From positions 310,001 through 374,000 of the forward strand of contig NIVC01000108.1 in the NCBI GenBank assembly GCA_002269645.1: a stretch of DNA of 64,000 nucleotides, in the 5' to 3' direction. The notes under the pieces were generated by a model, which did not search any database, was not told the DNA's origin, and saw nothing but the letters and a program-made list of their open reading frames with translations. Made by a program: the position numbers and the translations under genes. Source of the DNA: Macrostomum lignano. Taxonomy: Eukaryota. This document shows, piece by piece, positions 14,801 to 62,859 of the stretch (positions are counted from its first letter, which is position 1; each line of letters opens with the position of its first letter).

Positions 14801-17027
14801 ACGTGCTTGACGGTGACTTCCGTGCTGCCGCTGATGCATCGGGGCAGCATGGCGGTGTCGGCGCCCTTAGTGATGAGCCAGAGGACGCCCATGGGGTCGG
14901 AGACCACAACCGACATCCGCCTGCGGTCTGAGTCGAACTCGAGCACGTGCAGCAGCTGAGGTGGGCGGGGATTAAAATTTCTGAGGTTCCCAGAAATTCT
15001 TTGCCCCTCCTAGCAACTAGCAACCAATGTCTTTACCAGAGCAACTATACTATCCCAGCAGCCAATGCATTCTAGCTAGCAACAAATCTTTAATCGCCTA
15101 GCAACCAATTTGCTCATCTAGCAACTAGACATTATGCCTTTGCCTAGGAACCAAATCCTTTCGTCTAGCACCCAAATCCTTTCGCCTAGTAACCAAATCA
15201 TTTTGTCTAACAATCAAATTCTTTTCTTAATAACAACCATAAACTTCGACTAGCAACCAGATCTTTTTTGCCTAGCAACCAAATCCTTTTGCCTAGCAAC
15301 CAAACCGTTTCACCTAACAACTAAATAATTCTGCATAGCAACTAAACCCTTTAATCTAGCAACCAAATCCTTTCGCCTAGCAACCAAATCATTTCGCCTA
15401 GCAACCAAATCATTTCGCCTAGCAACAAAATTCTGATCACCTGGTAGTCCAGGCTGCGACCTCCGACCCCAACCGTCAGCTGGTTGCCCGTCCTGCCGCG
15501 GAAGGTGACGCCCAGCTTCCGGCAGCCGTCCAGCAGCGCCTTCTCGTCCGGTGAGCTGGCGTGGTAAACCAGGCGGCCGCTGTTGCCCGACCGCTCGGCC
15601 CGGGCCGTGTGGCAGAGGGCCAGGTGGGTGAGGAACTCCTGCTGCGCCGGCCCCAGCTGCTGCTTGCTGTTGTGGCTGGCCAGCAGGGAGCTGCCCTTCA
15701 GCGAGTACTTCACGCCGTTGATGGAGCAGCCGCGGAAGGTCATGATGTTCTCCGTGAGGGTGCCAGTCTTGTCGCAGAACAGGTGGTCAACGACGCCGAG
15801 CTCCTCAATGATTTCGGACGTGTTGGCCTTCGCCCAGTTGCTCGGGTCGTCGTCCGACATCCGGTGGAACATCTCGAGGTCGTGATCGATGAACATGGAG
15901 CAGAAGAACTTCTGCACCTCGATGGTGACCAGCATGGAGATGGGGATGATGTAGTGCATGATAATGAGCGCGTTCAGCGTCTCCTGGAAGTTCGGGCGCT
16001 TGAGCTGCTCGCCGGGCAGGAACCAGGCCTTGCTGATGGCGTCGGAGCGGGCAATGAGCAGGTTGCCCGCCACCAGCACGCAGGTGAGCAGCAGCAGCAG
16101 GCCGATCAGCACCAGCATGAAGCTGTTGAGTCTGGTGTCCACCACCGATCGCTTGGCCCGCGACCCCCTGGAGTTAAGGCCAACCTTCGTCTCCGAGCCG
16201 GTGTACAGCGCCAGGCCGTAGGCGAAGTTGGTGTTGCGGAGCACCGCGCCGCGCAGCAGGACATTGCTGGCATTCAGTGGGATGGAGGAGTGCGCCTGCG
16301 GCTTCACCAGCTGCAGCACGCCAGCGAAGCTGTAGAGGTCGGGCTTGGGCTGCTCGCAAACCACCTTGCCCAGCAGTTCGGAGCACAGCAGCCCCGCGTT
16401 CCGCAGTGACTTGGTGGCCTCGACGGCCCAGAAGGTCTTCAAGTTGGTCTCGCCGTCCAGATTGGCGGTGGTGACGAGGCACTCGCCGGAGTGCTGCGAG
16501 CTGGACAGCAGCAGCAGGTCACACGGGAAGCACTCGTTGCGGAACACCTTCACCAGGTCGCCCACGCGCAGCTGCTCGGAGCTGACCAGCTGGCTCTCGC
16601 CGTCCCGCACCACCCAAACGAGGGTCTTGTTGACTTTCCTGTCCTCCAGGTGGCGCAGCAGGTCCTCGTAGCCCTGCTTCACCATGGTGACCAGGATGAC
16701 GAAGGCCAGGGGCAGGATGGAGGCCATCTCGCTGACGGGCGTGTCAGTGGACAGCTGGATGATGCAGGCCACCAGGAAATAAAGGTTGGGCAGCCGGCTG
16801 ATCTGCTCCAGCAGGTTCAGCGGCAGGAAAGTGATGATGTTGTAGCGCGCGGTGGACACGGAGTTGTTGGGGTACTTCTCCGACTGGCCGATGCTTGGCT
16901 TGCCGTCCGGACCGGGCAGCTCGAAGTTGAGGTGGTTGATGTACACCGTGCGGAGCTCCGGGCGCGGCGACTCGCACAGCAGCTTTGGCTTAACCAGCTG
17001 CCACAGGGTCTCCAGGGGGCTCGCCAT
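11844..17027 (-). CDS. ATP11: P4-ATPase phospholipid flippase, ATP11 subfamily (5 exons, ~1125 aa)
   Basis: Exons 17027-15441, 14955-14524, 14171-13696, 13154-12593 and 12164-11844, all GT-AG and phase-consistent. Motifs DGETNLK, IIPISMLVTIEVQKF, phosphorylation site DKTGTLT, LTGDK|VETA (split by intron 2), GDGANDVSMI. Which ATP11 paralog (A/B/C) cannot be assigned. Confidence 0.93.
12190..12578. repeat. 23-bp minisatellite in ATP11 intron 4 (AAATCATCAACTCAGCCAGTCGG)
   Basis: Fills nearly the whole intron. Confidence 0.95.
13250..13550. repeat. 14-bp minisatellite in ATP11 intron 3 (CCGGAAGCTACAGA)
   Basis: Direct reading. Confidence 0.9.
14205..14470. repeat. ~58-60-bp tandem repeat in ATP11 intron 2
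   Basis: GCTGGCAGCCAATCAG...GAGGTCAGTAGCGGAGTGAGGTGGATGAAGTTA, about 4.5 copies. Confidence 0.9.
15010..15427. repeat. Degenerate ~21-bp repeat (CCTAGCAACCAAATC...) in ATP11 intron 1
   Basis: About 10 recognisable CTAGCAAC cores. Confidence 0.8.
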
Positions 17028-33600: not shown

Positions 33601-36600
33601 TGCTGAGTCAACTGGCTGAGGGCAGTATCCAGCTTTGATGCTTCTGTTGCAGTTGCCTTTCTGGCCTTCTTTGGCGCACTTTCCGCAAACTCTCGCATTG
33701 ACGCCTCACTGGGGTCAGTTGTTGCAGCCTGGGCCTCTGCTCGACTGGACTGTTGCGCCTCATCATTGACCGAGGTTGCCTGCTGAGAGGGTCCAGCAGA
33801 TCCCACAGCTACAAGTTCTGGTGTGGGCGGAGGCACATTTGAGGTAGTATCGCCAATGTAGTCACACTTGTCCAGGAAGTTCATGCGACTGTATATTCCC
33901 AACCGCCTGGGAGTAGGCTTGACCGCACTCCCACTCGGAAGCTTGCTTCCACGCCGGAAAACAAACTAGTTACGCTTGAGACCTTGAAACCGCTTGAGGC
34001 ACCAAGTTGCATCCTTGCCCAAAGTCTCAGCGATCTGATTCCATGCGCTGGTTTTCGCCTGCTGATCCTTGAATTTTCGGCTTGAGATGTTGTAGACAAC
34101 TTCATGTTTGGCAACTTCATCTATCAGAGTTGCATCCAACTCCGGAGTCTCGTGTGACAAGTCGGACATTTCCAGGTATCAAGTTGTGTGGAGTTTGGGG
34201 TGAAGAATAGAGCATGGTTCTATTCGTTTCATATAGCCTCCAGCTGTGCTCCTGTCTGGTTGCGCAAGAAATTGTCTGTACTCATTGTACAGTGAGCAGT
34301 GAGCAATGACACAATCGTTTAAATTTACTGTACGCCTACCCCTGCCATCCATGCTGCAGAAGCGGACAACTCAAAGCAAGGAGTTGTGAGTGTTTATGTG
34401 AATGGGGTGCATTTCGGTTTCGTTTGCCATGCATAAAATTGAAAGTTATATTGTCCTTTCTAGTTCTAATGAATAGAACCAAATAAAATCACTATTAGAG
34501 TCCGCCAGGAGCGGCGGACTTTCGGATAGTAGAGCTGCGCACGGATAGTAGCGTTCGCAATCAGCTGGTAGCGGCGGCGAACAGCTATTAGTTTGAAGCA
34601 CGGAGCTATTTGCGGAAATGTGAACCAGGCTTAAGATGTTAAATCGTGTTGAAGAATTCTCAAGCCGATGCCTCCCACCATTCGCTGACATCGCAGGCAC
34701 CCTACCGGCTCCTGTTTTACAATAATTGTATCTAACTGACAGCGTATTTAACAGACTGGCCGACACCCCCGGGAGGCTTGAGTTCCTTCCTTGGCCTTAG
34801 GCTGCTAACTCTAATTCCCCACCCAGTTATCGACCATGGGACACGAAACCGCCACGACACCTCGACGCGACATCTCGTGAATGTCCCTGTGAAACCCATT
34901 GGCTACGGACACACCTGGTGCATAGTAAACACACCTGATGCATAGTAAACACACCTGGTGCATAGTAAACACACCTGGTGCATAGTAAACACACCTGATG
35001 CATAGTAAACACACCTGGTGCATAGTAAACACACCTGATGTATAGTAAACACACCTGGTGCATAGTAAACACACCTGGTGCATAGTAAACACACCTGATG
35101 CATAGTAAACACACCTGGTGCATAGTAAACACACCTGGTGCATAGTAAACACACCTGATGTATAGTAAACACACCTGGTGCATAGTAAACACACCTGTTG
35201 CATAGTAAACACACCTGGTGCATAGTAAACACACCTGGTGCATAGTAAACACACCTGGTGCATAGTAAACACACCTGGTGCATAGTAAACACACCTGGTG
35301 CATAGTAAACACACCTGGTGCATATTAAACACACCTGGTGCATAGTAAACACACTTGATGTATAGTAAACACACCTGGTGCATAGTAAACACACCTGGTG
35401 CATAGTAAACACACCTGGTGCATGGTAAACACACCTGGTGCATAGTAAACACACCTGGTGCATAGTAAACACACCTGATGTATAGTAAACACACCTGGTG
35501 CATAGTAAACACACCTGGTGCATAGTAAACACACCTGGTGCATGGTAAACACACCTGGTGCATAGTAAACACACCTGGTGCATAGTAAACACACCTGGTG
35601 CATAGTAAACACACCTGGTGCATAGTAAACACACCTGGTGCATAGTAAACACACCTGATGTATAGTAAACACACCTGGTGCATAGTAAACACACCTGGTG
35701 CATAGTAAACACACCTGATGCATAGTAAACACACCTGGTGCATAGTAAACACACCTGGTGCATAGTAAACACACCTGGTGCATAGTAAACACACCTGGTG
35801 CATAGTAAACACACCTGGTGCATAGTAAACACACTTGATGTATAGTAAACACACCTGGTGCATAGTAAACACACCTGGTGCATAGTAAACACACCTGGTG
35901 CATGGTAAACACACCTGGTGCATAGTAAACACACCTGGTGCATAGTAAACACACCTGGTGCATAGTAAACACACCTGGTGCATAGTAAACACACCTGGTG
36001 CATAGTAAACACACCTGGTGCATAGTAAACACACCTGATGTATAGTAAACACACCTGGTGCATAGTAAACACACCTGGTGCATAGTAAACACACCTGATG
36101 CATAGTAAACACACCTGGTGCATGGTAAACACACCTGGTGCATGGTAAACACACCTGGTGCATAGTAAACACACCTGGTGCATAGTGAACACACCTGGTG
36201 CATAGTAAACACACCTGGTGCATAGTAAACACACCTGGTGCATAGTAAACACACCTGATGTATAGTAAACACACCTGGTGCATAGTAAACACACCTGGTG
36301 CATAGTAAACACACCTGATGTATAGTAAACACACCTGGTGCATAGTAAACACACCTGGTGCATAGTAAACACACCTGATGCATAGTAAACACACCTGGTG
36401 CATGGTAAACACACCTGGTGCATGGTAAACACACCTGGTGCATAGTAAACACACCTGGTGCATAGTGAACACACCTGGTGCATAGTAAACACACCTGGTG
36501 CATAGTAAACACACCTGGTGCATAGTAAACACACCTGATGTATAGTAAACACACCTGGTGCATAGTAAACACACCTGATGCATAGTAAACACACCTGGTG

Positions 36601-37455
36601 CATAGTAAACACACCTGATGCATAGTAAACACACCTGGTGCATAGTAAACACACCTGGTGCATAGTAAACACACCTGGTGCATAGTAAACGCGGCTCTGG
36701 TGGCGCCGCCGCAGACGGTGACCAGCGCTAGCGTCACGGAGGCGATGCACAGGACGGCGACTACAGCGGGCGAGCCGGGCGGCCCGGCCAGCGGGCAGAG
36801 CAGCTGTATCAGGATGGCCAAGTCGTTCAGCACATCCGCCAGCAGCCGGTAGCGCTTGCAGTCCCAGTCCAGAGCGGTGCCATACAGCCAGGCGAACAGG
36901 ATGCGGCCCACCATGCCGCAGCCGTCGCGCAGCAGCCAGGCGAGGGTGGCGGCCGCCACCGATGCGCCCTGGTCGCCGACACCGTAGCCGGTCAGGACGG
37001 CCCGGCTGGCCAGGGCGCTGGTAAGGGAGCTGCAGAAGGCCTGGGCGGTGTCCCAAATCTGGTAGGTCAGGTAGTCAGCGGACACCGAGTCCGGGTAGCC
37101 CTGCGGCAGGAAGACGTCCTGCGGCGGGGTTACGGGAATTGGCTTGAGCTTGTTGTGGAACGCTGCTGAGATTTGGTGCATAAGAAAAGGATCGGCTTAG
37201 ACTTGGGTTACTGAATTAGGGAGAATTAAAGTAGGATTTGCTTAAATTTTGCAGAAATCAAGGAAGTCAAATGGATTTGAGGCAACAGAGAATTATTGAT
37301 TGAGTTGTTTAACAGCTTACCTTAGCAGTGCTAACTAAGCTATCAAGCTTTAATTTTTTGCTTTTGGTGACCAGCTTCTGATTGGTAAGAACATATTCTG
37401 TTGGTTCATTGGAGCCAACATATGTTTCTTGAAGCAGATATGATTGTGTAAGCAT
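30606..37455 (-). CDS. RUSF1: RUS1/RUSF1 family protein, paralog B (428 aa)
   Basis: Exons 37455-37321 (135 nt), 37118-36675 (444 nt) and 31313-30606 (708 nt), identical in length to paralog A. Intron 2 holds a splice-donor array and a Harbinger transposon. Confidence 0.9.
31708..33013 (+). pseudogene. Harbinger DDE transposase, frameshifted near the C-terminus
   Basis: ATG at 31708; motifs CLGAIDGKH, IVGDEAFPL, FNYRLSRARRTIENAFGIL. The conserved continuation (FLRPVIARIDHVEAFIRCAFVLHNF) lies in another frame after ~32650. Confidence 0.85.
33342..34169 (-). pseudogene. Harbinger MADF(-BESS-like) DNA-binding protein with an in-frame stop
   Basis: MADF-like LIDEVAKHEVVYNISSRKFKDQQAKTSAWNQIAETLG..CLKRFQGLKRN* (TAG at 33966-33968) continues in the same frame to 33342, including the BESS-like DEYASFGQAIGQAIRRLP segment. 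Confidence 0.8.
34911..36690. repeat. 20-bp tandem array (~89 copies) of the RUS1-B exon 2/intron 2 junction
   Basis: Minus-strand unit TTTACTATGCACCAG|GTGTG equals the last 15 exon nt plus the first 5 intron nt. Confidence 0.97.
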
Positions 37456-38335: not shown

Positions 38336-40550
38336 GTGAAAACTCTTCACCAGGGCCAGGCTTGTTTACCTGGGCCAAACTTAGTTTTCCCCAAAATTTG
38401 CAAGCCTGAGAGCATCCCACTGCTTGCCTAGTACCTTAGGGACATAGGATGAGCTGATTTCTTCCTTACTGCTAGTGAGAAAGACTGCCCTGCAGGCAAG
38501 ACCAATGGGTCTCCCTAAGCAACATTGCTTCAATGGAAGTCATTGGTTGCCAGGTACTAGCAGAATGGGCAGTCTCTTTTATCTCCTTGCTATATCCACT
38601 GGACACCCATGCAGCTAAGTCAAGTAAGTCAAGAAAATATTTAGCCTATGCCATGAAATTCATCTTATCACTATTACTAAAATACACTTTAAATCTTATA
38701 AAAATATCTATTGTTTAGGCTTATTATGAAAATGACTATCTGACAACAAAATGTCTATAATAGAATGACTTGTCACTAAAAAAACCTATATCCAATTGAT
38801 ATTTGGTCCCAAAAATAGAAGTTTAAGTTTTAAACCACCAGTTTTAAATGCCTCATCAGCTACTTAGTACTACTACTTAGGTGTTTTTTCAGGTAGGCAT
38901 TTTTGCGACTTCCTTGGTTGGCCACCAAATCAGTTGGCCAGATCAGCCAACTGTTACACATGTATACATGTATGTATACTTGTGCATATATGTTTTTTAT
39001 TTGAATGCACCCCACAGACAGCAACATTTCATTTTTAGCCAATAAGAAATTTAACTTAGATTGGATTAGTTGGTAGTTCAACACAAAGCAATCAATGATG
39101 CAAAAAAAATTGCACTTCTTTTTTGCACTTATTAAACTAAGTGCTAAGCTTAATAGGCTAAATTTCAATAACTAGTCTTCTAGCACCAATGTGCATTAGC
39201 AAAAAATAGTCTTGTACTAATAGTCTTCTTATTTTGGGCTATAGCCTTAATATAATGATATAATAGCAAAAGCTATCAAATCTTGCTAACCAAACAGTAG
39301 TGTTTAGAGTTAGGGTTAGGGAACAAGCAGGCATGAAAGCAAATATATAATATTGCATATAGATAGAGCTAATCAAGTGTTATATCTAAGCTTTTAACTA
39401 TGATAGAAATATTATTTCCTATACAAACTTCTTGATTTTTCTTATAAAATATTGGACTTGCTCTTATTTTATTCTTATATTTATTAAAAAATGTGAAACA
39501 AATCTAGGAACTAAACAAATAGCAAAAACCTTTTTTCCAAATACCAAATAAAAATATCAAATGACTGTCAGCATAATTTATAATCTGCTATGTTCAGTTG
39601 ATTTATAATTCATAAGTAGCTATATAAACATTTTTTATATGTAAAGATATAGAATTAGAAGTTTGACATAATTTGCTTTTTGTAGCTTTGTTTTATTTAG
39701 ACTAGTATTACAGTTCAAAAGTTATAAGTATTTAAAGTTTAAAACCATGATAGGACCTTCTTATAGAATGACCCTTACAGCTTGTTTTCTTATAGACCTA
39801 ATGATAATATTGCTTTGAAAAAATGGGAAACTGCATTAAATTTAATATTTTCTTTATTTTTAGTAACAAAAGCACAATACTAGTTTCATAATCAAATCTC
39901 AAACAACCTAGTAATTATTTTCTACATAGCTTAAGGGAAATATCAATTCAGATTCAACTGGAAAGGTCCAACAACCATCACATATGTAAACAATTAATAA
40001 CACTTACATTAAAACATTGACATGACACCCTAAATTATGTCAGAAATACAGCCATAAATTTTCAATTTTTATTAGAAAAGATACCATCCTAAAATAAATT
40101 CCCCATATATAAAATTAAAAAGTACTGTAAAGTTTTGTTTGCATCTAAAATCTTTATAAAATCTACAATAAAAAATCTGTTGCTGGATTGTCTGTCATCT
40201 GATTGTCTTGAATTGGGCTCTTCGAGACACTTGCAAGCTTAGCTTAAGGCTGTTTCACACTGCCATCAAATAAGACGAAATTTCGTATGATCACACAATT
40301 TGTAAATCAATTCCTTTGATCAAATTTGTAAATCAAAGATTCCTTTGTGCATTGGTCGTGTGAGTTAGTTGGTGGCTTGTTTGATGGGGTGTGTATGTGA
40401 GTGAATGATATAATCAAGGACCACTAGAAGAAGGACGGGACACTTAGTTTCTTGGAAAATTTATTAAAGGCTGATCTTCTAGTGGTCCTCTCACTTGGAT
40501 AAGGATATACAATATATAATTCGCGCGAGTTTAGAAATGCGTTTTTAAAT

Positions 40551-50400: not shown

Positions 50401-50803
50401 GCAAAGACTTCCTAAGAGAGCCCATGGCATTCTCCGGGCCCAGAAGTCCGTGGGTGAGCCGGTTTGCGCAGAGAAAAGTGCATCTTAGACCGGCATGTCG
50501 CCTTCCTGAGCTGCGGCACGGCAGGAAGTGGCGGGGGGGGGCGGGGAGCTGAAGACAGGGAGTGGGTCAAGTAGAGAGGAAATTATCCTAAGGGAGTTAT
50601 CATTAAGGGAATTTTATTGGCAGGCTTTCATTGGGGTTTGTAGTCGGGACTCGTTTATCATACCGTAACTTTTCGGGGGTAACGATTAGAGGGTATTTTC
50701 GTCAGGGCTTATCACGGGTGTTCTACAATATTTCTCAGGAGGCATTTTATGAGACTTTATCCTGAGATGGACATTTATGTGGGTATTTCGTCAGGAGTAT
50801 TTA

Positions 50804-51769
50804 TGTTGTGACCTGCGTCACAGTGCTCCCTTGGTGCAAGTGCACTTTGATAGTTGTTGACTTTGGTAGTTGATTATTGTTACCCCCCCCCCCCGGCTCA
50901 AGCCAGTCTGGAGCTATGAGCCCTTTGGCTGAGCCTCTGCTCTCTTTCTCTCTCTCTCTCGCCTTGGCTGTTTAGCCCTTTGGCTAGCCGTGCTGATTGG
51001 CTGGGCCTCTGCTCTCTCTCCCTCTCCCTGGCCGTGCGCGCTTTCACCCTCCCCTCGCCGCAGCCAATCAGCTGTCAATCAGCTCCATTGTTTAAGCCCT
51101 TTCTCCCCCCCCTTGTTTGCGCCCCTGCCCCTTTTTACTCGTTATTTAAGGCGACGCTCAGACCCCGCCCCTTTTCTCACCGTGCCTGCGCCCATTTGCG
51201 CCCACCGCGATAAATAAACGAACGTGACCAGCGATCAGCCGTAAAGACGGTCTCTTACTGCGAAGACTCAATTTATTGCAATCGATCGGCCTTCCCGTGT
51301 ATGAGTGCTATAATCGACCCGGCCCGGTAAGCTGTCGAGACAATTGCCTGTGTTCCTCGGGGTCGCTCTCCTGATCTCTCTCTCTCTCACTCTCTCCTCA
51401 GTCTGACTCACCAGGCTGTCGAGTGGCCGACCGCCCGCAGCCCTCTCTCTCTTCCTTGACTCACCAGGCTGTCGAGTGGCCGCCCGCCCACAGCCCTCTC
51501 TCTTTTCCTTGATTCACCAGGCTGTCGAGTGGCCGACCGCCCGCAGCCCTCTCTCTCTTCCTTGACTCACCAGGCTGTCGAGTGGCCGCCTGCCCACAGC
51601 CGCCCCTCCCCTCTCTCTCGACTTCTCAACCTTGACCTCCCCCCGAAGTGTCCGTACGCCTCGGGGTCGCCGATCGAGCTCGTAAGCCCTGGGCAGTCTA
51701 GTACCCGAACCCCGACACCGCTACCCGTCGCCCAACCCGGCCGTGCCAGCGAGGAAGGGGGATACAACA
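50804..51769 (+). repeat. 5' LTR (966 bp)
   Basis: TG...CA ends; four copies of an internal 53-bp repeat (51405, 51458, 51511, 51564). Confidence 0.96.
51238..51280 (+). other. Spliced-leader-like sequence within the 5' LTR
   Basis: GCCGTAAAGACGGTCTCTTACTGCGAAGACTCAATTTATTGCA matches, from memory, the Macrostomum lignano SL exon lacking only its terminal TG; TAAATAAA at 51211-51218. Confidence 0.8.
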
Positions 51770-51770
51770 T

Positions 51771-51788
51771 TGGCGCCCGAACAGGGAC
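51771..51788 (+). promoter_or_regulatory. Primer-binding site complementary to tRNA-Lys(UUU)
   Basis: TGGCGCCCGAACAGGGAC, 1 nt after the LTR; this is the classic 18-nt tRNA-Lys3 PBS sequence. Confidence 0.92.
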
Positions 51789-51812
51789 TGCTCAGTTTGC
51801 TTGTGAGCTGTC

Positions 51813-52793
51813 ATGGCGAATGTGGACGAACTGATTCGGCTGCTAGCCGAGCGTCTGCGAGCGGATGGACCAGCCCAGCCACCGAGACTCCCGAAGCCCG
51901 TGAAGTACACGTCAAGCATGAATTTTCGACTCTGGCTGCGCTCTTTCAACGCTTATTGCGACTCCGCCGAGATTGACGAGGAGCATCGCCGCGAGCACTT
52001 GATGAGCATGCTGGATCTCGCTACGGCGTACGCTGCGGTCGATAATCTGAACCTGCCGGGACCCGACGATCCTGTGGATCCGCTGGACTACGAGGGATTC
52101 ACCGCCCGGTTGGAGGCTCGCTTCTCCCGGTACCGGACAGAGCAGGACAGCAAGGTCGAGCTAAAAACCCGAGATCAGAAGGATGGCGAGTCGTTGGAGG
52201 CCTACGCAGATGCTCTCCTTGAACTGGTGCGCTGTGCCTACCCGGCGGCAACTGCCGAGCTGCAGGACGACCTCGCGAAGGATCGCTTCATGCAAGGTGT
52301 GAGACTCTCCGACCTCCAGCGAGAGAAGCTCTACCTGCAGCAGCCCGAAGGTCTGGTGGCAGCACAACGCGCGGTGAGGCAGCTCGAGGCGGCGTCCAAG
52401 GCGGCGAAGGGACCGAGATCGGCTGGAGCAACTGGCAGCGGCCACCGAGGAGTCTTCGTGGTGAGCGGCGCGGCGGAATCTGTGCCTCGGGAGGATGGAG
52501 CCTACTCCCAAGAAAAGGACAAAGAGCTCGAGGAGTTGAAGAAACTGGTGAGGCAGCTTCAAGGCAAAGTGGTTCAGCTCGAGTCGCTGAGAGCGGAACC
52601 GCATAGCAGCGCCGCAGCTCGACCGACCGACTCCGACGAAGGCGACCATCAGAAGCCTCGACGAACGGGAGGAATTCGCTGCTTCTTCTGCAACAAGCCA
52701 GGGCACATCGCGACTAACTGCCCAACCCGTCAGCAACAGGGAAACGGCAAGGGGAACTTCCGCAGGGGCGAGGGAGTTCCGCCGAGACAGTAG
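51813..52793 (+). CDS. gag: Gag (326 aa)
   Basis: Retrotransposon capsid-like region (LKTRDQKDGESLEAYADALLELVRCAYP) and CCHC knuckle CFFCNKPGHIATNC. Confidence 0.93.
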   Translation: MANVDELIRLLAERLRADGPAQPPRLPKPVKYTSSMNFRLWLRSFNAYCDSAEIDEEHRREHLMSMLDLATAYAAVDNLNLPGPDDPVDPLDYEGFTARLEARFSRYRTEQDSKVELKTRDQKDGESLEAYADALLELVRCAYPAATAELQDDLAKDRFMQGVRLSDLQREKLYLQQPEGLVAAQRAVRQLEAASKAAKGPRSAGATGSGHRGVFVVSGAAESVPREDGAYSQEKDKELEELKKLVRQLQGKVVQLESLRAEPHSSAAARPTDSDEGDHQKPRRTGGIRCFFCNKPGHIATNCPTRQQQGNGKGNFRRGEGVPPRQ

Positions 52794-52842: not shown

Positions 52843-55800
52843 ATGCCGGCGGACTGCTCAAGAGATAGAGATCAACCTGCAACAGCTTTTAATCCCGTGT
52901 CAATCTACGTGTCGGTAAAAATTGGCGAGATTGAGTTGCCGTGTCTGTTGGATTCGGGCTCGGTCATGTCGCTGGTGAACGAGAGGACCTGGCGGCAGTT
53001 GAGCAAGTCGGTTCGAGTTGAACTCAGCCCTTCGGAAACCCACCTGATCTCAGCGAACGGAACTCCCATGAATGTGTTAGGATGCGCGTCGCTTCCCCTA
53101 CAGTTCGGATCAGAAACTTTACAGACGCCAATTGCGGTGGTCCAAGGGGTCGGCTACGAACTGTTGCTAGGCACCGACTTCTTACGCCGCCACCGGTGCC
53201 AAATCGATTTCGCCGGAGGAGTTTTCCGCGTGAACGGTTCACGTGTGCCAATCCGAGAGACCAAGCACAAACCAGTCGTCTGCCGGTTGTACCTGAACGA
53301 AAACTTGATCATTCCGGCCAATCACGAACGGACCGTCTCAGCCAGGATTCGGAGAACAGCGACACAGAATTCCGGAGTGCTTGGCGTCGCCGAGCCAGAC
53401 GAAAAACTGAAGAGCGATGAGAGACCAATGCTAGCCAGGAGCGTCTGCCTCATCCAGCAGGGCAACACCCTACCAGTTCACTTCGCGAATGTCACGGACT
53501 CCGAGCTGCGGCTGCGGAAGGGAGCTGTCATCGGCTGGTTTCGACCATCAGATCCGGCTCAAGAGGTTCTGGTAGCCAGCATCGAAGAGCAAGCGTCGGT
53601 TTTACGACCCAGCTGCGATCCATGGGACCCAGAGGCGGCACTGAACCAGCACGGCTCCAAGCAGCTCACGGGGGCAGACAAAGCGAGCTTCCTAAGATTG
53701 GTGAATCGATACGCAGATGTTTTCGCAGAGAGTACAGCGCGCCTCGGGACGACGGACATCGTGCAGCATGAAATTGAGACCACCGGAACAGCCGTAAAAC
53801 AGCCTCCGCGACGGCTACCGCCACATTGGCGCGGCGAAGTCGACCGACAAATCGACGAGCTTTTGGCAACGAAGATGATTGAACCGACCCAATCGCCGTG
53901 GAGTTCGCCAGTGGTCTGTGTCCGTAAGAAGAATGGGGAACTGCGACTGTGTGTCGACTACAGGGAGTTGAATCAACGAACTGTCAAGGACGCCATAGCA
54001 ATCCCGCGTGTCGATGACGCACTTGAAGCGCTCGGAGGTGCGGCTGTATTTTCGACGCTCGACCTGTGCTCCGGCTATTGGCAAGTTAAGGTCAAAAGGG
54101 AGGATCAAGAAAAGACTGCTTTTGTCATTCCGCATCGGGGGCAATTCGCGTTCAAGGTGCTGCCCTTCGGATTGACCAATGCGCCGGCGACATTCACAAG
54201 GTTGATGAATATGGTACTACACGACCTTCTGTGGAAAATGGCGCTCGTCTACATCGACGATATCATCATTTGGTCCCGAACTGTCAGCGAGCATCTAACG
54301 AATCTCGAGGCGGTATTCCAGCGCCTGCGCGCAGCCAACTTGAGGCTAAAGCCATCTAAGTGCAGATTCCTGGCCGATGAGGTCAAATTCCTTGGCCACG
54401 TCGTGTCAAAGGACGGAATCGATGTCGACCCGGAGAAGATCAAGGAAGTCCGTGACTGGAGCATTCCAAGAAATGCAAAAGACCTTCAGTCGTTCCTGGG
54501 TCTGGCTGGTTACTACCGAAACTTCATACCAGAATTCTCGATAGTCGCTGCACCACTTTTTGATCTGACAAAGAAAGACAAGCCGTTCAGTTGGAGAGAG
54601 GAACACGATGAGGCCTTCAAAAAGCTGAAAGAAGAATTGACCGGTTGCCGCGTGATGGCCTACCCGAACTTCGACCCCACGGCTGGTGAGTTCATCTTGG
54701 ATACCGATGGAAGTACCCGACAGGGTCTCGGAGCAGTCTTGTCGCAGGTACAAGAAGACGGGTCAGAGCGGGTTATTGCGTACGGGAGTCGGCGTCTGCA
54801 AGGGGCCGAATTCAACTATTGCACGACACGAATCGAGCTCCTGGCGCTGGTGACATTCGCAGAGAGGTTCCGGTACTATCTACTTGGCCGGAGGTTCCGG
54901 GTGCGCACCGACCACGCAAGTCTGCAGTGGCTCCGAAGTATGAGGCAGCCGGAAGGCCAGTTGGCTCGGTGGATGGAGAGGTTGGCGCCATTCGACTTCG
55001 CAGTGGAGCATCGGCCAGGGGCGCGTCATCAGAATGCGGACGCGCTGTCACGCAAGCCGCCGCGACGACATCCCGAAATGGATAACTGCCCGTCGTGCCG
55101 GACTGATGACCTCCCCGGGGTCAGGGTAACGACGCTGCTCGGGTTGCTCAGCCGAGATGAGCTGGCAGCAGCACAAGCTGTGGACAACGACATCGCTCCA
55201 GTTTACCAGTCGATGCACGCCGGCCGAGCAAACGAAGAGCCACCTGGGGGTGCGTCACCAACGACCCGAGCCATCTGGGCACAAAAGCCTCGGCTGGAAA
55301 TTGTGGACAACACCCTCGTCATCAAGGATCTGGGACATCACCCACCGCGGGCTGTTCTCCCGAAGAAATTGATCCCCGACGCTCTGCAGACGCTGCACTC
55401 TGGACCAGGAGGTGGACACTTCGGCGTAGCAAAGACTCTGGAGAAAGTCAGGAACCGATTCTGGAGACCCGGCTTGAAGCGAGAGGTCGAGGAGTTTGTG
55501 CGAAGGTGTGACGACTGTAACCGGAGCAAGCCCGGGATGCGGCGGAAGGCCCCATTGGAGCCGATTCCCAGCAGCCATGTGTTTGAAAGAGTGATGGTGG
55601 ATTTGATTGGACCACTGCCAACCAGCGTCCGAGGCAACAAATACATACTGACGATGCAGGACGCGTTCAGTAAGTGGCCAGTGGCAGTACCGGTGCCAGA
55701 TCAGACGGCCAGCACCTGTGCAAGGGCAATGCTCGAGGAGTGGGTCTGTCACTACGGAGCCCCAGGAACAATCCACTCGGATCAGGGAGCCAATTTCGAG

Positions 55801-56715
55801 TCGCAATTGATCGGCCAGCTGTGCGAAAGTCTGAATATCCGAAAGACGCGTACGACCGCCTATCACCCCTCTGGAAACGGCCAAGTGGAAAGCTTCAATA
55901 AGACGCTGACTGCAGTGATCCGGGCGCACCTGGTGAAGGAGCCGGATCAGAGGCGGTGGGACGAATTCGTTGCCCCGGCGCTCATGGCGTATCGCTCCAG
56001 TGTGCACCGCGGCACCGGCTACTCACCCTTCTTCCTTCTGCATGGTCGCGAGATGTCTCTGCCAGTTGACTTGGGAGTGGCGCGCCCACTGGACATCGAA
56101 CCGTACTGCGAGGAAGTCCAGAACCTGCGGGAGACGCTCGTGGAAGCCCATCGGGTGGTGCGTGAGAGAATAACGTCATATCAACGAGTGCAGAAAGACT
56201 GGTACGACCGGAAGGTGAAGGGTCGAGAATTCGTGGCTGGCGACGAGGTGTTTGTCTACAACCCCGTGTTGAAGGCCGGTGCCAAAGCGAAGCTCCACTC
56301 ACCCTGGACCGGACCTGCCGTAGTTCTCGAGAAGCTGTCGGAGACGCGCTATAGGATTCGACAGGAAGGTCGACGGAAGCCGATCAAGGTGGTGCACTTT
56401 AACAACCTCCTGCCTCGGTACCGGAAGTACCCGGTCGACGGCACCGGTGGCCCTCGGCGTCCTGCACCAAGGAGGTACCACCCAGGTCCTGCTCAAGAGA
56501 CGGAATCCGTCAGGGAGGACTCGCAGGAATCGGACGATGAGGATGAGGAGCGATGGTGGCGACATTCCGGGCGGGTTCGAGAGGAGGGAGAACCAATGGA
56601 TGTGCAGCAGCCAGGAGTGCAGCCGCAGCCGGAAGCGCCAGTTGAAGTCATCGAAGGTCGACCCCAGAGGGATCGAAGGGTTCCGCAGCGTTATGGAACG
56701 CCCGTTTATTATTAA
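52843..56715 (+). CDS. pol: Pol polyprotein: protease, RT, RNase H, integrase
   Basis: LLDSGS protease; RLCVDYRELN, LPFGLTNAPATF and YIDD for RT; RNase H LDTDGS..EL..DHASL; integrase HHCC (H..GGH..CDDC), DLIGP/SDQG/VESFNK and a GPY/F-like SPWTGP. Confidence 0.96.
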   Translation: MPADCSRDRDQPATAFNPVSIYVSVKIGEIELPCLLDSGSVMSLVNERTWRQLSKSVRVELSPSETHLISANGTPMNVLGCASLPLQFGSETLQTPIAVVQGVGYELLLGTDFLRRHRCQIDFAGGVFRVNGSRVPIRETKHKPVVCRLYLNENLIIPANHERTVSARIRRTATQNSGVLGVAEPDEKLKSDERPMLARSVCLIQQGNTLPVHFANVTDSELRLRKGAVIGWFRPSDPAQEVLVASIEEQASVLRPSCDPWDPEAALNQHGSKQLTGADKASFLRLVNRYADVFAESTARLGTTDIVQHEIETTGTAVKQPPRRLPPHWRGEVDRQIDELLATKMIEPTQSPWSSPVVCVRKKNGELRLCVDYRELNQRTVKDAIAIPRVDDALEALGGAAVFSTLDLCSGYWQVKVKREDQEKTAFVIPHRGQFAFKVLPFGLTNAPATFTRLMNMVLHDLLWKMALVYIDDIIIWSRTVSEHLTNLEAVFQRLRAANLRLKPSKCRFLADEVKFLGHVVSKDGIDVDPEKIKEVRDWSIPRNAKDLQSFLGLAGYYRNFIPEFSIVAAPLFDLTKKDKPFSWREEHDEAFKKLKEELTGCRVMAYPNFDPTAGEFILDTDGSTRQGLGAVLSQVQEDGSERVIAYGSRRLQGAEFNYCTTRIELLALVTFAERFRYYLLGRRFRVRTDHASLQWLRSMRQPEGQLARWMERLAPFDFAVEHRPGARHQNADALSRKPPRRHPEMDNCPSCRTDDLPGVRVTTLLGLLSRDELAAAQAVDNDIAPVYQSMHAGRANEEPPGGASPTTRAIWAQKPRLEIVDNTLVIKDLGHHPPRAVLPKKLIPDALQTLHSGPGGGHFGVAKTLEKVRNRFWRPGLKREVEEFVRRCDDCNRSKPGMRRKAPLEPIPSSHVFERVMVDLIGPLPTSVRGNKYILTMQDAFSKWPVAVPVPDQTASTCARAMLEEWVCHYGAPGTIHSDQGANFESQLIGQLCESLNIRKTRTTAYHPSGNGQVESFNKTLTAVIRAHLVKEPDQRRWDEFVAPALMAYRSSVHRGTGYSPFFLLHGREMSLPVDLGVARPLDIEPYCEEVQNLRETLVEAHRVVRERITSYQRVQKDWYDRKVKGREFVAGDEVFVYNPVLKAGAKAKLHSPWTGPAVVLEKLSETRYRIRQEGRRKPIKVVHFNNLLPRYRKYPVDGTGGPRRPAPRRYHPGPAQETESVREDSQESDDEDEERWWRHSGRVREEGEPMDVQQPGVQPQPEAPVEVIEGRPQRDRRVPQRYGTPVYY

Positions 56716-56742
56716 GAGCGGACGTGAGTGCGTGCGCAATGT

Positions 56743-56975
56743 CGCGTCATCTCCTGCGTCATAAATAATTGGTTCGAAGCATCATCCGCGTCATCACCTG
56801 CGTCATCAACATTTGGTTCGAAGCATCATCCGCGTCATCACCTGCGTCATCAACATTTGGTTCGAAGCATCATCCGCGTCATCACCTGCGTCATCAACAT
56901 TTGGTTCGAAGCATCATCCGCGTCATCACCTGCGTCATCAACATTTGGTTCGAAGCATCGTCTGCGTCATCACCC
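56743..56975. repeat. 44-bp tandem repeat between pol and ORF3
   Basis: CGCGTCATCACCTGCGTCATCAACATTTGGTTCGAAGCATCATC, about 5 copies. Confidence 0.92.
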
Positions 56976-57179
56976 GCGTTATTGAAAACTGGGCTCGTGT
57001 TATTGCCTCTGCTTCACAAACAAAAATATATATTTCCCCTCTTAAGGCCCGTCAGGGAGGTCCCACCTGCCCAACCCTGCCATCAGGGATGAAGGATCGG
57101 CGCCCCAAAGAGGCTCGAAGGAACCATTGCCCTGCTCTCAAAAGTGAGTCGTGGTTGTTGCAGGCACTGCTTTCCGGGC

Positions 57180-58061
57180 ATGGACCTCTACGCCGAGTTT
57201 GGTGTCAGCCCCTTCGCGACGGAGGAGGAGCTGCGACGTGCGTACCGCCGTGAGAGCCTGCGACGGCACCCCGACAAGTGTGGACCCGGTGGAACGGAGA
57301 ATTTCCAGAGGCTGCAGCATGCGAGTGCGGTCCTGCTGTGTCCGTTTCGACGAGCGCTGTACGACCGGTTCGGGCAGGATGCCGTTAGCAACCCGCTCGA
57401 GTGCGCCCGGTATTTTGTCCCGCCGGATGGGATGTGCGTCCCGGAGGAGTTTGTCGTAACGATTGAAGACGAAACAGAAGAGTCAGACGAGGACAGGGAG
57501 TCGGAAGGAAGCGAGCGTGGTGGTTGCGGCGGCGAGGAGACTGCTCAGAGCTGCTGTGAAATCACGCAGTCAGAGGAAGAAGAGCTCTTGAATGAATTCG
57601 ACGGCGAAACTTCGATGTCAGAAGACGAACCGGAGCTCGTCATCGACCAACGGGAGTCGCCAGCGTGGCTGATGAGGAGCGAGCCGAGTACCGAGGTGGA
57701 ATACACCTGGAGCGGGGAGGCAACGCAGCGAAGAGCTCGAATCCGGTCGGAGCTTCGGCACGCTTTGTTGTCGGGGAGTCCAGCTGCGATGTTCCGGCTT
57801 TTGACTGAAATGGTGGGACTGTGCGGCAGCGAGCGGCTGGATCATCGACGCGAAATCGCCGAGCTTTTGGCTCAGACTGTCAAGTTCATTCTCCGTGACA
57901 TCAGCGCCAAGTGTCGGGGTCATGCTCGGCGTGTCTGGCGGCGGCCTGCCTTCAAGCGAAGCACTCGGTTCGTCATGAGTGTTGCGATCCCTCAGTTTGA
58001 ACTAATCGACGGAGGACGCGTGTTGGGGTTGTTGCGCCGGGCGGCGGAGGTGGCGGTCTAG
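57180..58061 (+). CDS. ORF3: J-domain (DnaJ/Hsp40-type) protein, 293 aa, encoded inside the retrotransposon
   Basis: DLYAEFGVSPFATEEELRRAYRRESLRRHPDK...ENFQRLQHASAVLLCPFRRALYDRFG is a complete J-domain with HPD at 57267-57275, followed by an acidic linker and a predicted helical C-terminal domain; intact ORF. Confidence 0.88.
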   Translation: MDLYAEFGVSPFATEEELRRAYRRESLRRHPDKCGPGGTENFQRLQHASAVLLCPFRRALYDRFGQDAVSNPLECARYFVPPDGMCVPEEFVVTIEDETEESDEDRESEGSERGGCGGEETAQSCCEITQSEEEELLNEFDGETSMSEDEPELVIDQRESPAWLMRSEPSTEVEYTWSGEATQRRARIRSELRHALLSGSPAAMFRLLTEMVGLCGSERLDHRREIAELLAQTVKFILRDISAKCRGHARRVWRRPAFKRSTRFVMSVAIPQFELIDGGRVLGLLRRAAEVAV

Positions 58062-58490: not shown

Positions 58491-58501
58491 AGGGGGGAGG
58501 G
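58491..58501 (+). promoter_or_regulatory. Polypurine tract
   Basis: AGGGGGGAGGG preceded by a T-run, directly abutting the 3' LTR. Confidence 0.9.
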
Positions 58502-59358
58502 TGTTGTGACCTGTGTCACAGTGCTCCCTTGGTGCAAGTGCACTTTGATAGTTGTTGACTTTGGTAGTTGATTATTGTTACCCCCCCCCCGGCTCAAGCC
58601 AGTCTGGAGCTATGAGCCCTTTGGCTGAGCCTCTGCTCTCTTTCTCTCTCTCGCCTTGGCTGTTTAGCCCTTTGGCTAGCCGTGCTGATTGGCTGGGCCT
58701 CTGCTCTCTCTCCCTCTCCCTGGCCGTGCGCGCTTTCACCCTCCCCTCGCCGCAGCCAATCAGCTGTCAATCAGCTCCATTGTTTAAGCCCTTTCTCCCC
58801 CCCCCTTGTTTGCGCCCCTGCCCCTTTTTACTCGTTATTTAAGGCGACGCTCAGACCCCGCCCCTTTTCTCACCGTGCCTGCGCCCATTTGCGCCCACCG
58901 CGATAAATAAACGAACGTGACCAGCGATCAGCCGTAAAGACGGTCTCTTACTGCGAAGACTCAATTTATTGCAATCGATCGGCCTTCCCGTGTATGAGTG
59001 CTATAATCGACCCGGCCCGGTAAGCTGTCGAGACAATTGCCTGTGTTCCTCGGGGTCGCTCTCCTGATCTCTCTCTCTCTCTCACTCTCTCCTCAGTCTG
59101 ACTCACCAGGCTGTCGAGTGGCCGACCGCCCGCAGCCCTCTCTCTCTTCCTTGACTCACCAGGCTGTCGAGTGGCCGCCTGCCCACAGCCGCCCCTCCCC
59201 TCTCTCTCGACTTCTCAACCTTGACCTCCCCCCGAAGTGTCCGTACGCCTCGGGGTCGCCGATCGAGCTCGTAAGCCCTGGGCAGTCTAGTACCCGAACC
59301 CCGACACCGCTACCCGTCGCCCAACCCGGCCGTGCCAGCGAGGAAGGGGGATACAACA
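58502..59358 (+). repeat. 3' LTR (857 bp)
   Basis: Near-identical to the 5' LTR but with two rather than four 53-bp internal repeats; SL-like copy at 58931-58973. Confidence 0.96.
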
Positions 59359-59662
59359 TTTACTCAAGATTATTTCTTCGGAGGTATTTCCTCGGGGTAT
59401 TTCCTCAGGGGTATTTCCTCGGGGTATTTCTTCAGGGGCATTTCCTCGGGAGTATTTCTTCGGTGGTATTTCCTCTTGAGTATTTCCTCAGAGGTATTTC
59501 TTCAGGGGTATTTCGTCAGGGGTATTTCGTCAGGGGTATATCCTAAGGGTTATTTCCTTAGGAGTATTTCCTAAAGGTAATCAGTCGGTGGTGGGGGTGA
59601 ACGGAAGGTCAGCTGCTCAGCCTTCGCCTCCAACCGTCTCGGAATTGCAGCGCACTCGCGAC

Positions 59663-61183: not shown

Positions 61184-61544
61184 TCGGCGAGGCCTCTGAT
61201 TGCTCAACTCGCAGCCCGGACTCCCAGGTGAGCAGAGTGGAGTGTCCGAGTTTTCGATTGCAGGGTTTGACTTGGCCGACTTGTAGAGCTTTTGTATGGC
61301 CCTGGCTTAACGCCATCGGGCACACAGCCTGCGCTGAGGCAATTCTGCCCATTCCACGGACTCCTGCGCTAATAGCGTACGCAGACACGCACTCACACAC
61401 GCGCTCACACAGGGTGCACAGCGCCTCTGTACATAATCGTCAAGTATGTGCACTCTGTGCCTTGGGGGTTGGCGGTCCTCATGAGTTGTGAATCTTCCCC
61501 AAAAGAATGCGGAAGTAAACAGAATCGAGCTTGTGAACCTCAGT

Positions 61545-61930
61545 GTTGCGAACTTTGAACCTCAGGGTCGAACTTGTTAATCTCAGAGTCGAACTTGTTA
61601 ATCTCAGAGTCGAACTTGTGAATCTCAGGGTCGAACTTGTGAACCTCAGGGTCGAACTTGTGAACCTCAGGGTCGAACTTGTGAATCTCAGGGTCGAACT
61701 TGTGAATCTCAGGGTCGAACTTGTGGATCTCAGGGTCGAACTTGTGAATCTCAGGGTCGAACTTGTGGATCTCAGGGTCGAACTTGTGAACCTCAGGGTC
61801 GAACTTGTGAACCTCAGGGTCGAACTTGTGAACCTCAGGGTCGAACTTGTGAATCTCAGGGTCGAACTTGTGAATCTCAGGGTCGAACTTGTGGATCTCA
61901 GGGTCGAACTTGTGAATCTCAGGGTCGAAC
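61545..61930. repeat. 21-bp minisatellite (CAGGGTCGAACTTGTGAATCT)
   Basis: About 18 copies. Confidence 0.96.
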
Positions 61931-62859
61931 ATGCACAAGAATTTCCGGACTGGTAAAAAAGTTGTGTCCAAATTCTAGATTGTCCGACCTGAAGTCCAGA
62001 TTCTGGATCACAGGTGTCCGACATGCCAGTCTCTGTGTCCGGTTTCTAGATCATACGGTGTGCCGCTGTAGTCAGACCATTGCAGGTACCAAATTTGATG
62101 CAGCGGCACCTGTCAGTGATCTATCTGAGCCCCTCGAAAATCCCGAGAAAAGGCAGTTTTATAGTTAGCACAGTCTGTTTTGATGCACGACGATATCTAT
62201 GAAAATTTACAGATTTTTATCCCTTTATTTTCTCTACATACTACTGATACGAATTTGGACAGTAGTGCACTGCGATAATGCGGCCAGCCAAAGTTTTGCA
62301 ATTTTTCTCATCCCCATCTCTGGCCCCGCAGGACCTCGGGCGGCTCGCGGCCCGAACCTCAGCGGCTTCGTGAGACTTTAATTTTTTGTCAGTCGAGCGG
62401 CGAACTCCAAAATCAGTCGGCTCTCGACGCGGTAGAGTGAAACCCATCGCTCGTTGATTTCCGTGACTTTCTCTTTCAGAAGATTTTCTTGTGCAATTGG
62501 CACTTTCTTCAAAAATCGTTCGTGATAGCGCAGTTTCTGAGCTTCACTCTTTGCTAGCAAAGTCTTCCTGACCCCCCCCCCGTTGCCCGCCTCACCCGCC
62601 CTCTTCATTCTTTCCCGTCTGTTTCTTGGCCTGGCTGCCGCAACTCTTAGATCCTCATCTTCAGTTTCTCAGCAAAACAAAACAAAGACCAGCGAGACAC
62701 GGGCAGGCAGAGCCCGATTTCTAGCTGTTGAAATCGCGGTGACTGTAGGAGTGCGGTTGCTATTTTGTGCAAGGCAAGCTGACTGCAGCAGCAGCTCCAT
62801 CACGGTGCAGTCTGCCAGTATGTACAGAGAATCTCGGGGTTCCCGGGGGGGGGGTCGAG

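Follow-up and report, generated by a model that had tools for sequence, protein, structure and literature searches.

Several kinds of association between retroelements and host small RNAs are known. SLACS, CZAR, CRE and NeSL-1, which PMC3636483 mentions, are retrotransposons without long terminal repeats (LTRs) that insert into spliced leader (SL) RNA genes, and U6/L1 and other chimeric retrocopies of small nuclear RNA (snRNA) and mRNA arise by template switching of reverse transcriptase (RT). Pieces of the SL itself have also been found within mobile elements. In parasitic flatworms, 597 candidate SL loci were discarded as mobile-element-associated ("primarily LTR and LINE", that is, long interspersed nuclear elements), and these held partial leaders only (PMC12582326, 2025). 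For dinoflagellates, relict SLs from retroposed trans-spliced RNAs are mentioned there with reference to Slamovits and Keeling (2008, as cited in PMC12582326). Here we analyze a 64,000-nt stretch of the genome of the flatworm Macrostomum lignano (contig NIVC01000108.1, positions 310,001 to 374,000), called the window below. It contains an intact 8.6-kb element of the Ty3/gypsy group (Metaviridae), complete with LTRs, primer-binding site (PBS), polypurine tract (PPT), gag, pol and a third open reading frame (ORF3). Each of the two LTRs of this young, intact element carries a short motif that is probably a relic of the host SL exon, retro-captured and now fixed there. An earlier note on this DNA had regarded such a structure as undescribed in LTR elements. 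That has to be withdrawn, since the flatworm study already found partial SLs in elements of both kinds, LTR and LINE, and explains them by the same origin. The LTR-borne SL relic is a phenomenon already noted in flatworms, and the M. lignano case is an unusually clean one.

The published SL consensus of M. lignano has 44 nt, CCGTAAAGACGGTCTCTTACTGCGAAGACTCAATTTATTGCATG (Grudniewska et al. 2016, PMC5173321). Ustyantsev and Berezikov (2021, PMC8629364) used the last 35 nt of the SL; in their description, the SL RNA gene is 109 nt long, its donor is GTAAG and its Sm-like site is flanked by two hairpins (PMC8629364). In the window, the 43-mer GCCGTAAAGACGGTCTCTTACTGCGAAGACTCAATTTATTGCA occurs exactly twice, at 51238-51280 and 58931-58973, both times on the plus strand, where shuffled sequences give an expectation of 0. 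Positions 51239-51282 match the published SL at 42 of 44 sites, both mismatches being the final two bases. If the G in front of the SL is counted, the copy covers 43 of 45 nt and is exact over 43/43. It lacks the terminal TG, and thus the AUG of the leader, as well as the GT(AAG) donor: the LTR reads ...TTGCA/ATCG (a slash marks a boundary here and below), whereas the gene reads ...TTGCATG/GTAAG. The copy lies on the same strand as gag and pol, i.e. in sense orientation, and its junctions with the LTR, CAGCGATCAGCCGTAAAG and TTTATTGCAATCGATCGGCC, are diagnostic. The observations from which the earlier note started are therefore sound. The motif is indeed present in both LTRs, and these are true LTRs; it begins 27 nt after the first base of the TAAATAAA box (51211-51218); its identity with the M. 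lignano SL exon is verified by the alignment; and the loss of the TG, the AUG and the donor is evident from the comparison of the LTR with SL genes.

The genuine SL RNA genes used in this comparison were obtained by scanning metagenome contigs for a 22-mer of the SL and by a scan of contigs of prokaryotic genomes. The metagenome scan gave six SL-containing contigs, five of them transcript-like (L004-L007 and L009) and one genomic (L008). All five transcript-like contigs show the junction GCATG/exon, each having ...TTGCATG at its beginning, joined to differing exons. L008 contains a genuine SL RNA gene at 615-723, and a second one was found in the prokaryotic scan, at 1589-1697 of L010; the exon of each is identical to the M. 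lignano SL. L010 (JAGQZA010000190.1, listed as a Flavobacteriaceae metagenome-assembled genome) is AT-rich and clearly represents flatworm contamination of a bacterial assembly. A U1 snRNA gene lies beside its SL gene, at 1121-1283, as judged by an Rfam match. Rfam has no flatworm SL family, and this U1 gene was the only match obtained from it.

Both SL RNA genes are laid out as ...cttt/GCCGTAAAG...TTGCATG/GTAAGACACC..., followed by two hairpins and the Sm-like site AUUUUUAG. Their introns differ from each other in loops and stems. Folding of the two genes gives the three hairpins expected, with z = -3.3 and -4.6, respectively. In the equivalent 109 nt of the LTR (51238-51346), an SL-RNA-like fold is absent (z = +0.66), and so is any A(U)nG Sm-like site. 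The homology begins at the G before CCGT, at a T/G pyrimidine-purine step that is kept in both SL RNA genes, and this G is probably the +1 position of the SL RNA. Upstream of it, the sequences are unrelated: cttt in both SL genes versus gcgatca in the LTR. Homology between the LTR and the SL genes is limited to the G and SL nt 1-42, without promoter, intron, donor, Sm site or hairpins. An exon-only copy in sense orientation points to a sequence taken from RNA, and to neither a gene copy nor a working SL gene. At the level of sequence, the motif is thus shown to be an exon-only copy, evidently captured from an RNA. The proposal of the earlier note that the element captured the SL through reverse transcription of an RNA gains support from the same features, namely the exon-only boundaries, the sense strand and the missing promoter and intron of the gene.

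Two alternatives can be judged directly from these data. First, the LTR might hold an SL RNA gene, functional or variant, whose leader is donated in trans-splicing, comparable to the 5S sequence of Cassandra. A near-complete SL exon, with a GTAAG 47 nt downstream, is what recommends this idea, but there is no GT at the end of the exon, the Sm-like site is missing, the fold has a positive z and the upstream sequence is not shared. We consider it extremely improbable. Second, the motif could be due to chance, to an assembly artefact or to copying of an SL RNA gene at the DNA level, by gene conversion or insertion. This is just as remote; only the presence of the motif itself speaks for it. Against it stand the 43/43 match with 0 expected, found in both LTRs and in a second contig (NIVC01003073.1), boundaries close to those of the RNA exon (2 nt short on the 3' side) and the absence of flanking gene sequence.

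The second contig provides another copy of the family. Part of the window pol is 100% identical to BOX15_Mlig001877g1, and the locus encoding the latter is on NIVC01003073.1 (L011) of the same assembly, GCA_002269645.1. The internal region of this second element is 99.5% identical to that of the window element, but its flanks are unrelated to those in the window, and its 5' junction is different (...GTACATG/TGTTG). The 5' LTR of L011 contains the same 43-mer with the same two junctions; its 3' LTR ends with the contig before the position of the motif. Because the junctions are identical in an independently inserted element, the motif was inherited through retrotransposition. As read from these junctions, the SL was already in the LTR of the common ancestor and has since gone through a complete cycle of transcription, reverse transcription and integration at least once. 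The earlier note had suggested asking whether the motif is kept in other family members, and in L011 it is. The three full LTRs together show 7 substitution columns, and their central 470 nt, including the SL, are invariant, although with only 7 variable columns from two copies this invariance has no statistical power with respect to selection. No further copies of the element were found in the window, and a composite query of ORF3 and the pol termini revealed no further M. lignano fragments. Scans of viral contigs with the SL, with an LTR-specific 28-mer and with gag were all empty.

More distant relatives place the capture within the clade. A search of the protein collection for gag homologues yielded only three relatives, at about 44% identity. 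Two elements from an environmental sample, L001 and L014, have the same PBS and the same gag-pol-DnaJ layout, and are about 44% identical to the window element in gag and 45-46% in pol. The M. lignano SL, the one looked for, is absent from the LTRs of both. Judging from these LTRs, the SL capture is specific to the M. lignano lineage within this clade. Two other candidates were set aside: L012, an M. lignano family with pol 46% identical, has no recognisable LTR or SL and is uninformative, and the distance of L013, taken from an ENA assembly, is too great for it to help. Only at the promoter block and at a CGGCC...GTGAGTG block can the LTRs of the window element and of L001 be aligned reliably, and the sequence that preceded the insertion cannot be fixed from this alignment. 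Positions 1-1000 of L014 contain the end of ORF3 and the PPT, then just one LTR, and continue into the PBS and gag; this could reflect a tandem arrangement, a one-LTR circle or an assembly collapse.

The position of the SL in the element transcript may be read in two ways. In the first, transcription would start upstream, and the SL would lie inside the 5' leader, at or near the border between the repeated region R and U5. This is the reading that we favour, tentatively, as plausible but short of probable. The TAAATAAA box includes AATAAA at 51213-51218 (58906-58911 in the 3' LTR), which is the sole canonical poly(A) hexamer of the LTR, where base composition predicts 0.016. A CA at 51236-51237, 18-19 nt past the AATAAA, ends directly before the SL (CA/G). 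The U-rich stretch GGTCTCTTACTG of the SL is then 12-24 nt past the putative cleavage site, where a downstream element would be. Farther upstream, the TATTTAAGG box and the two CCAAT boxes (Table 1) belong to a block, CCAAT plus ATTTAAGG..CTCAG.CCC, that the window LTR has in common with the SL-less L001, spacing included. This conserved block predicts that transcription starts near 51175 and that the poly(A) signal falls within an R of about 60 nt, which is the classical arrangement. From ATTTAAGG to the CGGCC...GTGAGTG block, L001 has 68 nt and the window has 143 nt; the window LTR thus has about 72 additional nt, made up of a 29-nt segment with the AATAAA and the 43-nt SL.

Several observations weigh against an upstream start. 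The placement of U3, R and U5 is based on sequence motifs only. No run of A residues separates the putative cleavage site from the SL. L014 has a box, AATAAATAG, that resembles a TATA box, and the 47 nt between the end of the SL and the GTAAG are close to the start-to-donor distance deduced for the relatives, about 50 nt; these two features speak for a start at the SL. Finally, L001 has no canonical poly(A) hexamer, and this clade may not need one.

Alternatively, as the earlier note proposed, TAAATAAA could be a TATA box, with transcription starting at or within a few nucleotides of the first SL base. The RNAs of the element would then begin with a genome-encoded SL and mimic trans-spliced host mRNAs, with a benefit in translation, export, stability or escape from silencing. 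The spacing of 27 nt from box to SL and an initiator-like TCAG at 51235-51238 agree with such a start, and the captured 5' end of an RNA would naturally fall at the U3/R border. In the relatives, the A/T box is followed by GTGAGT or GTAAGT at a distance of about 80 nt. L014 has a single A/T box, AGAATAAATAGGG, an initiator-like CTCATCC about 31 nt on and GTAAGT about 50 nt further; in L001, CATTTAAGG is followed by CCAGACC at about 30 nt and, some 50 nt beyond, by GTGAGT. The window GTAAG, 47 nt past the end of the SL, looks as though the SL had been joined to the ancestral 5' end, and the motif is kept in two copies. However, the same TAAATAAA holds the only poly(A) hexamer of the LTR, and if this hexamer is used, a start at 51238 leaves an R of at most about 10 nt. 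Moreover, the homologue of the TATA box of L001 is the upstream TATTTAAGG. The AUG of the SL, conserved in flatworm SLs, is missing from the copy, and the LTR-type junction is absent among the six SL-containing metagenome contigs, which are a very small sample. We therefore consider a start at the SL possible but unlikely.

Mimicry itself is a further step. Hypermethylation of the cap to trimethylguanosine (TMG) depends on the Sm site. A transcript of the LTR, without such a site, is expected to have an m7G cap and not a TMG cap, and mimicry would then be limited to sequence. That mimicry brings a demonstrable benefit seems to us quite improbable. The same low standing is given to the full scheme, in which the LTR promoter, or the SL DNA acting as an initiator, would start transcription at the first SL base. 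The leader would then be encoded in every genomic RNA and mRNA of the element, with no need of trans-splicing, and the element would profit from it in translation, in export from the nucleus or in escape from small-RNA surveillance. If it were true, a retroelement would have the 5' identity tag of host mRNAs hard-wired, which would be a novel way for a mobile element to imitate host mRNAs.

The SL segment might instead have been retained as a cis element, i.e. as the U-rich downstream part of the poly(A) signal, as an initiator or as an intragenic promoter element. In Ascaris, the SL sequence is an intragenic promoter element of its own gene. The position of GGTCTCTTACTG 12-24 nt past the putative cleavage site would suit a downstream element, and the central LTR including the SL is invariant in three LTRs. 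On the other hand, this invariance carries no statistical weight, given the 7 substitution columns, and the SL-less relatives manage without the SL. A retained cis function is thus rather improbable.

We return to the retro-captured relic, for which the following route may be proposed. An RNA of the element, or a co-packaged RNA, would have had the SL at its 5' end, the simplest source being SL trans-splicing of the element's own leader. The RNA of Cer1 in Caenorhabditis elegans is SL1 trans-spliced (PMC3315495), and about 30% of M. lignano genes are trans-spliced and about 15% are in operons (PMC8629364). The poly(A) site of the 5' LTR may have been used, and the downstream fragment may have been rescued by SL addition, as in operon processing. 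The RT of the element would have copied this 5'-truncated leader, ending on the SL. An irregular strand transfer to a full-length template would then have put the SL into the LTR, and normal replication would have propagated it. What does not fit easily is the 3' boundary: the copy stops at GCA, 2 nt short of the splice junction GCATG, so that a simple trans-spliced junction accounts for it only with one further event. The terminal TG could have been lost either by a 2-nt deletion or by a microhomology switch at GCA. The leader (51170-51812, up to the gag AUG) has 1 ATG versus 5.7 expected (P ~0.02), and with such avoidance of AUG in the leader, loss of the AUG of the SL would be favoured. A direct repeat that flanks the SL (CGATCAGCCGT / CGATCGGCCTT, 9/11) was considered as a signature of microhomology or target duplication and rejected, as about 30% of control window pairs are equal to it. 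We infer that the SL is a tolerated passenger, as nothing in the sequence indicates a function.

The features of the element are collected in Table 1.

Table 1. Features of the SL-bearing Ty3/gypsy element (window coordinates)
Feature	Position	Strand	Remarks
SL-exon copy, 5' LTR	51238..51280	+	begins GCCGTAAAGACGG, ends TTGCA; G + SL nt 1-42
SL-exon copy, 3' LTR, identical	58931..58973	+	sequence match
5' LTR	50804..51769	+	966 nt, TG...CA ends
3' LTR	58502..59358	+	857 nt, TG...CA ends
Target-site duplication TTTA (4 bp)	50800..50803 and 59359-59362		flanks of element
CCAAT boxes CCAATCAG and CAATCAG	51064..51082	+	~75 nt upstream of TATTTAAGG, spacing as in L001
TATTTAAGG box, then ...CTCAG.CCC	51143..51151 (3' LTR 58836-58844)	+	conserved in SL-less L001
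TAAATAAA	51211..51218	+	TATA-like; includes AATAAA 51213-51218 (3' LTR 58906-58911)
GTAAG, 5'-splice-site-like	51327..51331	+	47 nt past end of SL copy; another near 51688
53-nt tandem repeats, predicted U5	51375..51608	+	4 copies in 5' LTR
PBS TGGCGCCCGAACAGGGAC	51771..51788	+	adjoins 5' LTR
gag	51813..52793	+	326 aa, CCHC zinc knuckle
pol (protease, RT, RNase H, integrase)	52843..56715	+	ORF + Pfam matches
Acceptor-like TTGTTGCAG/G	57144-57180	+	directly upstream of ORF3 ATG
ORF3, N-terminal DnaJ (J) domain	57180..58061	+	domain match
PPT AGGGGGGAGGG	58491..58501	+	adjoins 3' LTR

The 5' and 3' LTRs differ by about 3 substitutions, a few small indels and 2 additional copies of a 53-nt repeat in the 5' LTR. 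This small divergence indicates a young insertion. The copy number of the 53-nt repeat varies, with 4 in the 5' LTR, 2 in the 3' LTR (59070-59197) and 6 in L011 (8220-8530). The PBS, of the tRNA-Lys3 type, is identical in its 18 nt to that of HIV-1. The same PBS is present in L001 (820-837), L002 (122-139) and L014 (973-990), and that of L003 differs. Pfam matches follow in the order zf-CCHC, RVT_1, RT_RNaseH, Integrase_H2C2 and rve. The pol frame, open from position 52591 onward, shares 203 nt with the end of gag, which makes a frameshift likely. The acceptor-like TTGTTGCAG/G, together with the GTAAG sites at 51327 and about 51688, suggests a spliced or SL trans-spliced subgenomic ORF3 mRNA, as in Cer1. 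A 44-nt tandem repeat (about 6 copies) occupies 56699-57026, between pol and ORF3. No exact protein records were found for gag, pol and ORF3 of the window.

A DnaJ ORF3 is also present in the relatives L001 (5865-6659; 32% identity, E 2e-17) and L014 (6003-7094), and in the M. lignano UniRef model A0A1I8H0P8. By its domain content and distribution, this ORF defines a Ty3/gypsy lineage with a gene that resembles an Hsp70 co-chaperone. A quick literature search found no description of a Ty3/gypsy lineage carrying DnaJ. The DnaJ ORF3 may be linked to the heat-shock-responsive LTR elements reported in M. lignano. Heat-shock elements were not found in the window LTR.

Elsewhere in the window, at 7111-8673 (plus strand) and at 15351-17027, 35325-37181 and 39095-39188 (all minus strand), the host content includes an ORF for a 2-hydroxyacid dehydrogenase, an N-terminal exon of a P4-ATPase (flippase), an ORF with a UVB_sens_prot/RUS domain followed by a low-complexity repeat, and a 94-nt tRNA-Asn(att) called by ARAGORN, which probably either contains an intron or is a pseudogene. 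A 21-nt tandem repeat with about 25 copies is found at 61472-61996, about 2 kb downstream of the element.

LTR-borne SL copies of this kind can pass for SL RNA genes, and in the mapping of SL-containing reads they can be taken for trans-splice sites. Genome-encoded SL copies have already caused confusion in M. lignano, as the "SL RNA" first reported for this species maps to the 5' end of a protein-coding gene (PMC8629364). The search for SL genes in the same study demanded 100% matches to the 35-mer (PMC8629364), and since the last two SL bases are absent from the LTR copies, such a search misses them. A survey of LTR retrotransposons in M. lignano does not mention the SL; LTR-reporter transgenesis exists for this species (PMC12801592). 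The element offers a clean and datable case of SL trans-splicing meeting retrotransposition: either its own RNA or a co-packaged RNA bore the host leader, and the resulting chimeric LTR with the SL stayed replication-competent.

How does this case compare with the systems mentioned at the outset? The loci from parasitic flatworms are a by-product of filtering, and their anatomy is not described (PMC12582326). In contrast, the M. lignano copy belongs to a free-living host and is exact and near full length; the element is intact and has the copy in each LTR, at a defined site by the TATA-like/poly(A) box, and at least two insertions share it. Cer1 resembles the present element in being a Ty3/gypsy element in an SL-trans-splicing host whose own RNA is SL trans-spliced, which would be the first step for capture; however, its SL is added post-transcriptionally to a subgenomic RNA and is not encoded in the LTR (PMC3315495). 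The terminal-repeat retrotransposon in miniature (TRIM) Cassandra also has a host small-RNA sequence, 5S rRNA, in its LTR and propagates it with the element (PMC10853983, PMC7215508). But Cassandra keeps the internal Pol III promoter of 5S, which is thought to be in use, whereas the SL copy of M. lignano retains the exon only. SLACS, CZAR, CRE and NeSL-1 likewise show an association of retroelement and SL, but in M. lignano the piece of SL lies inside the element, and the flanking DNA is ordinary. Finally, the U6/L1 chimeras are similar in that an snRNA sequence starting precisely at the 5' end is joined to sequence of a retroelement or mRNA, and template switching of this kind would be an alternative route to the same structure. 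These chimeras, however, are LINE-mediated dead-end pseudogenes, whereas the chimera of M. lignano is part of a replicating LTR.

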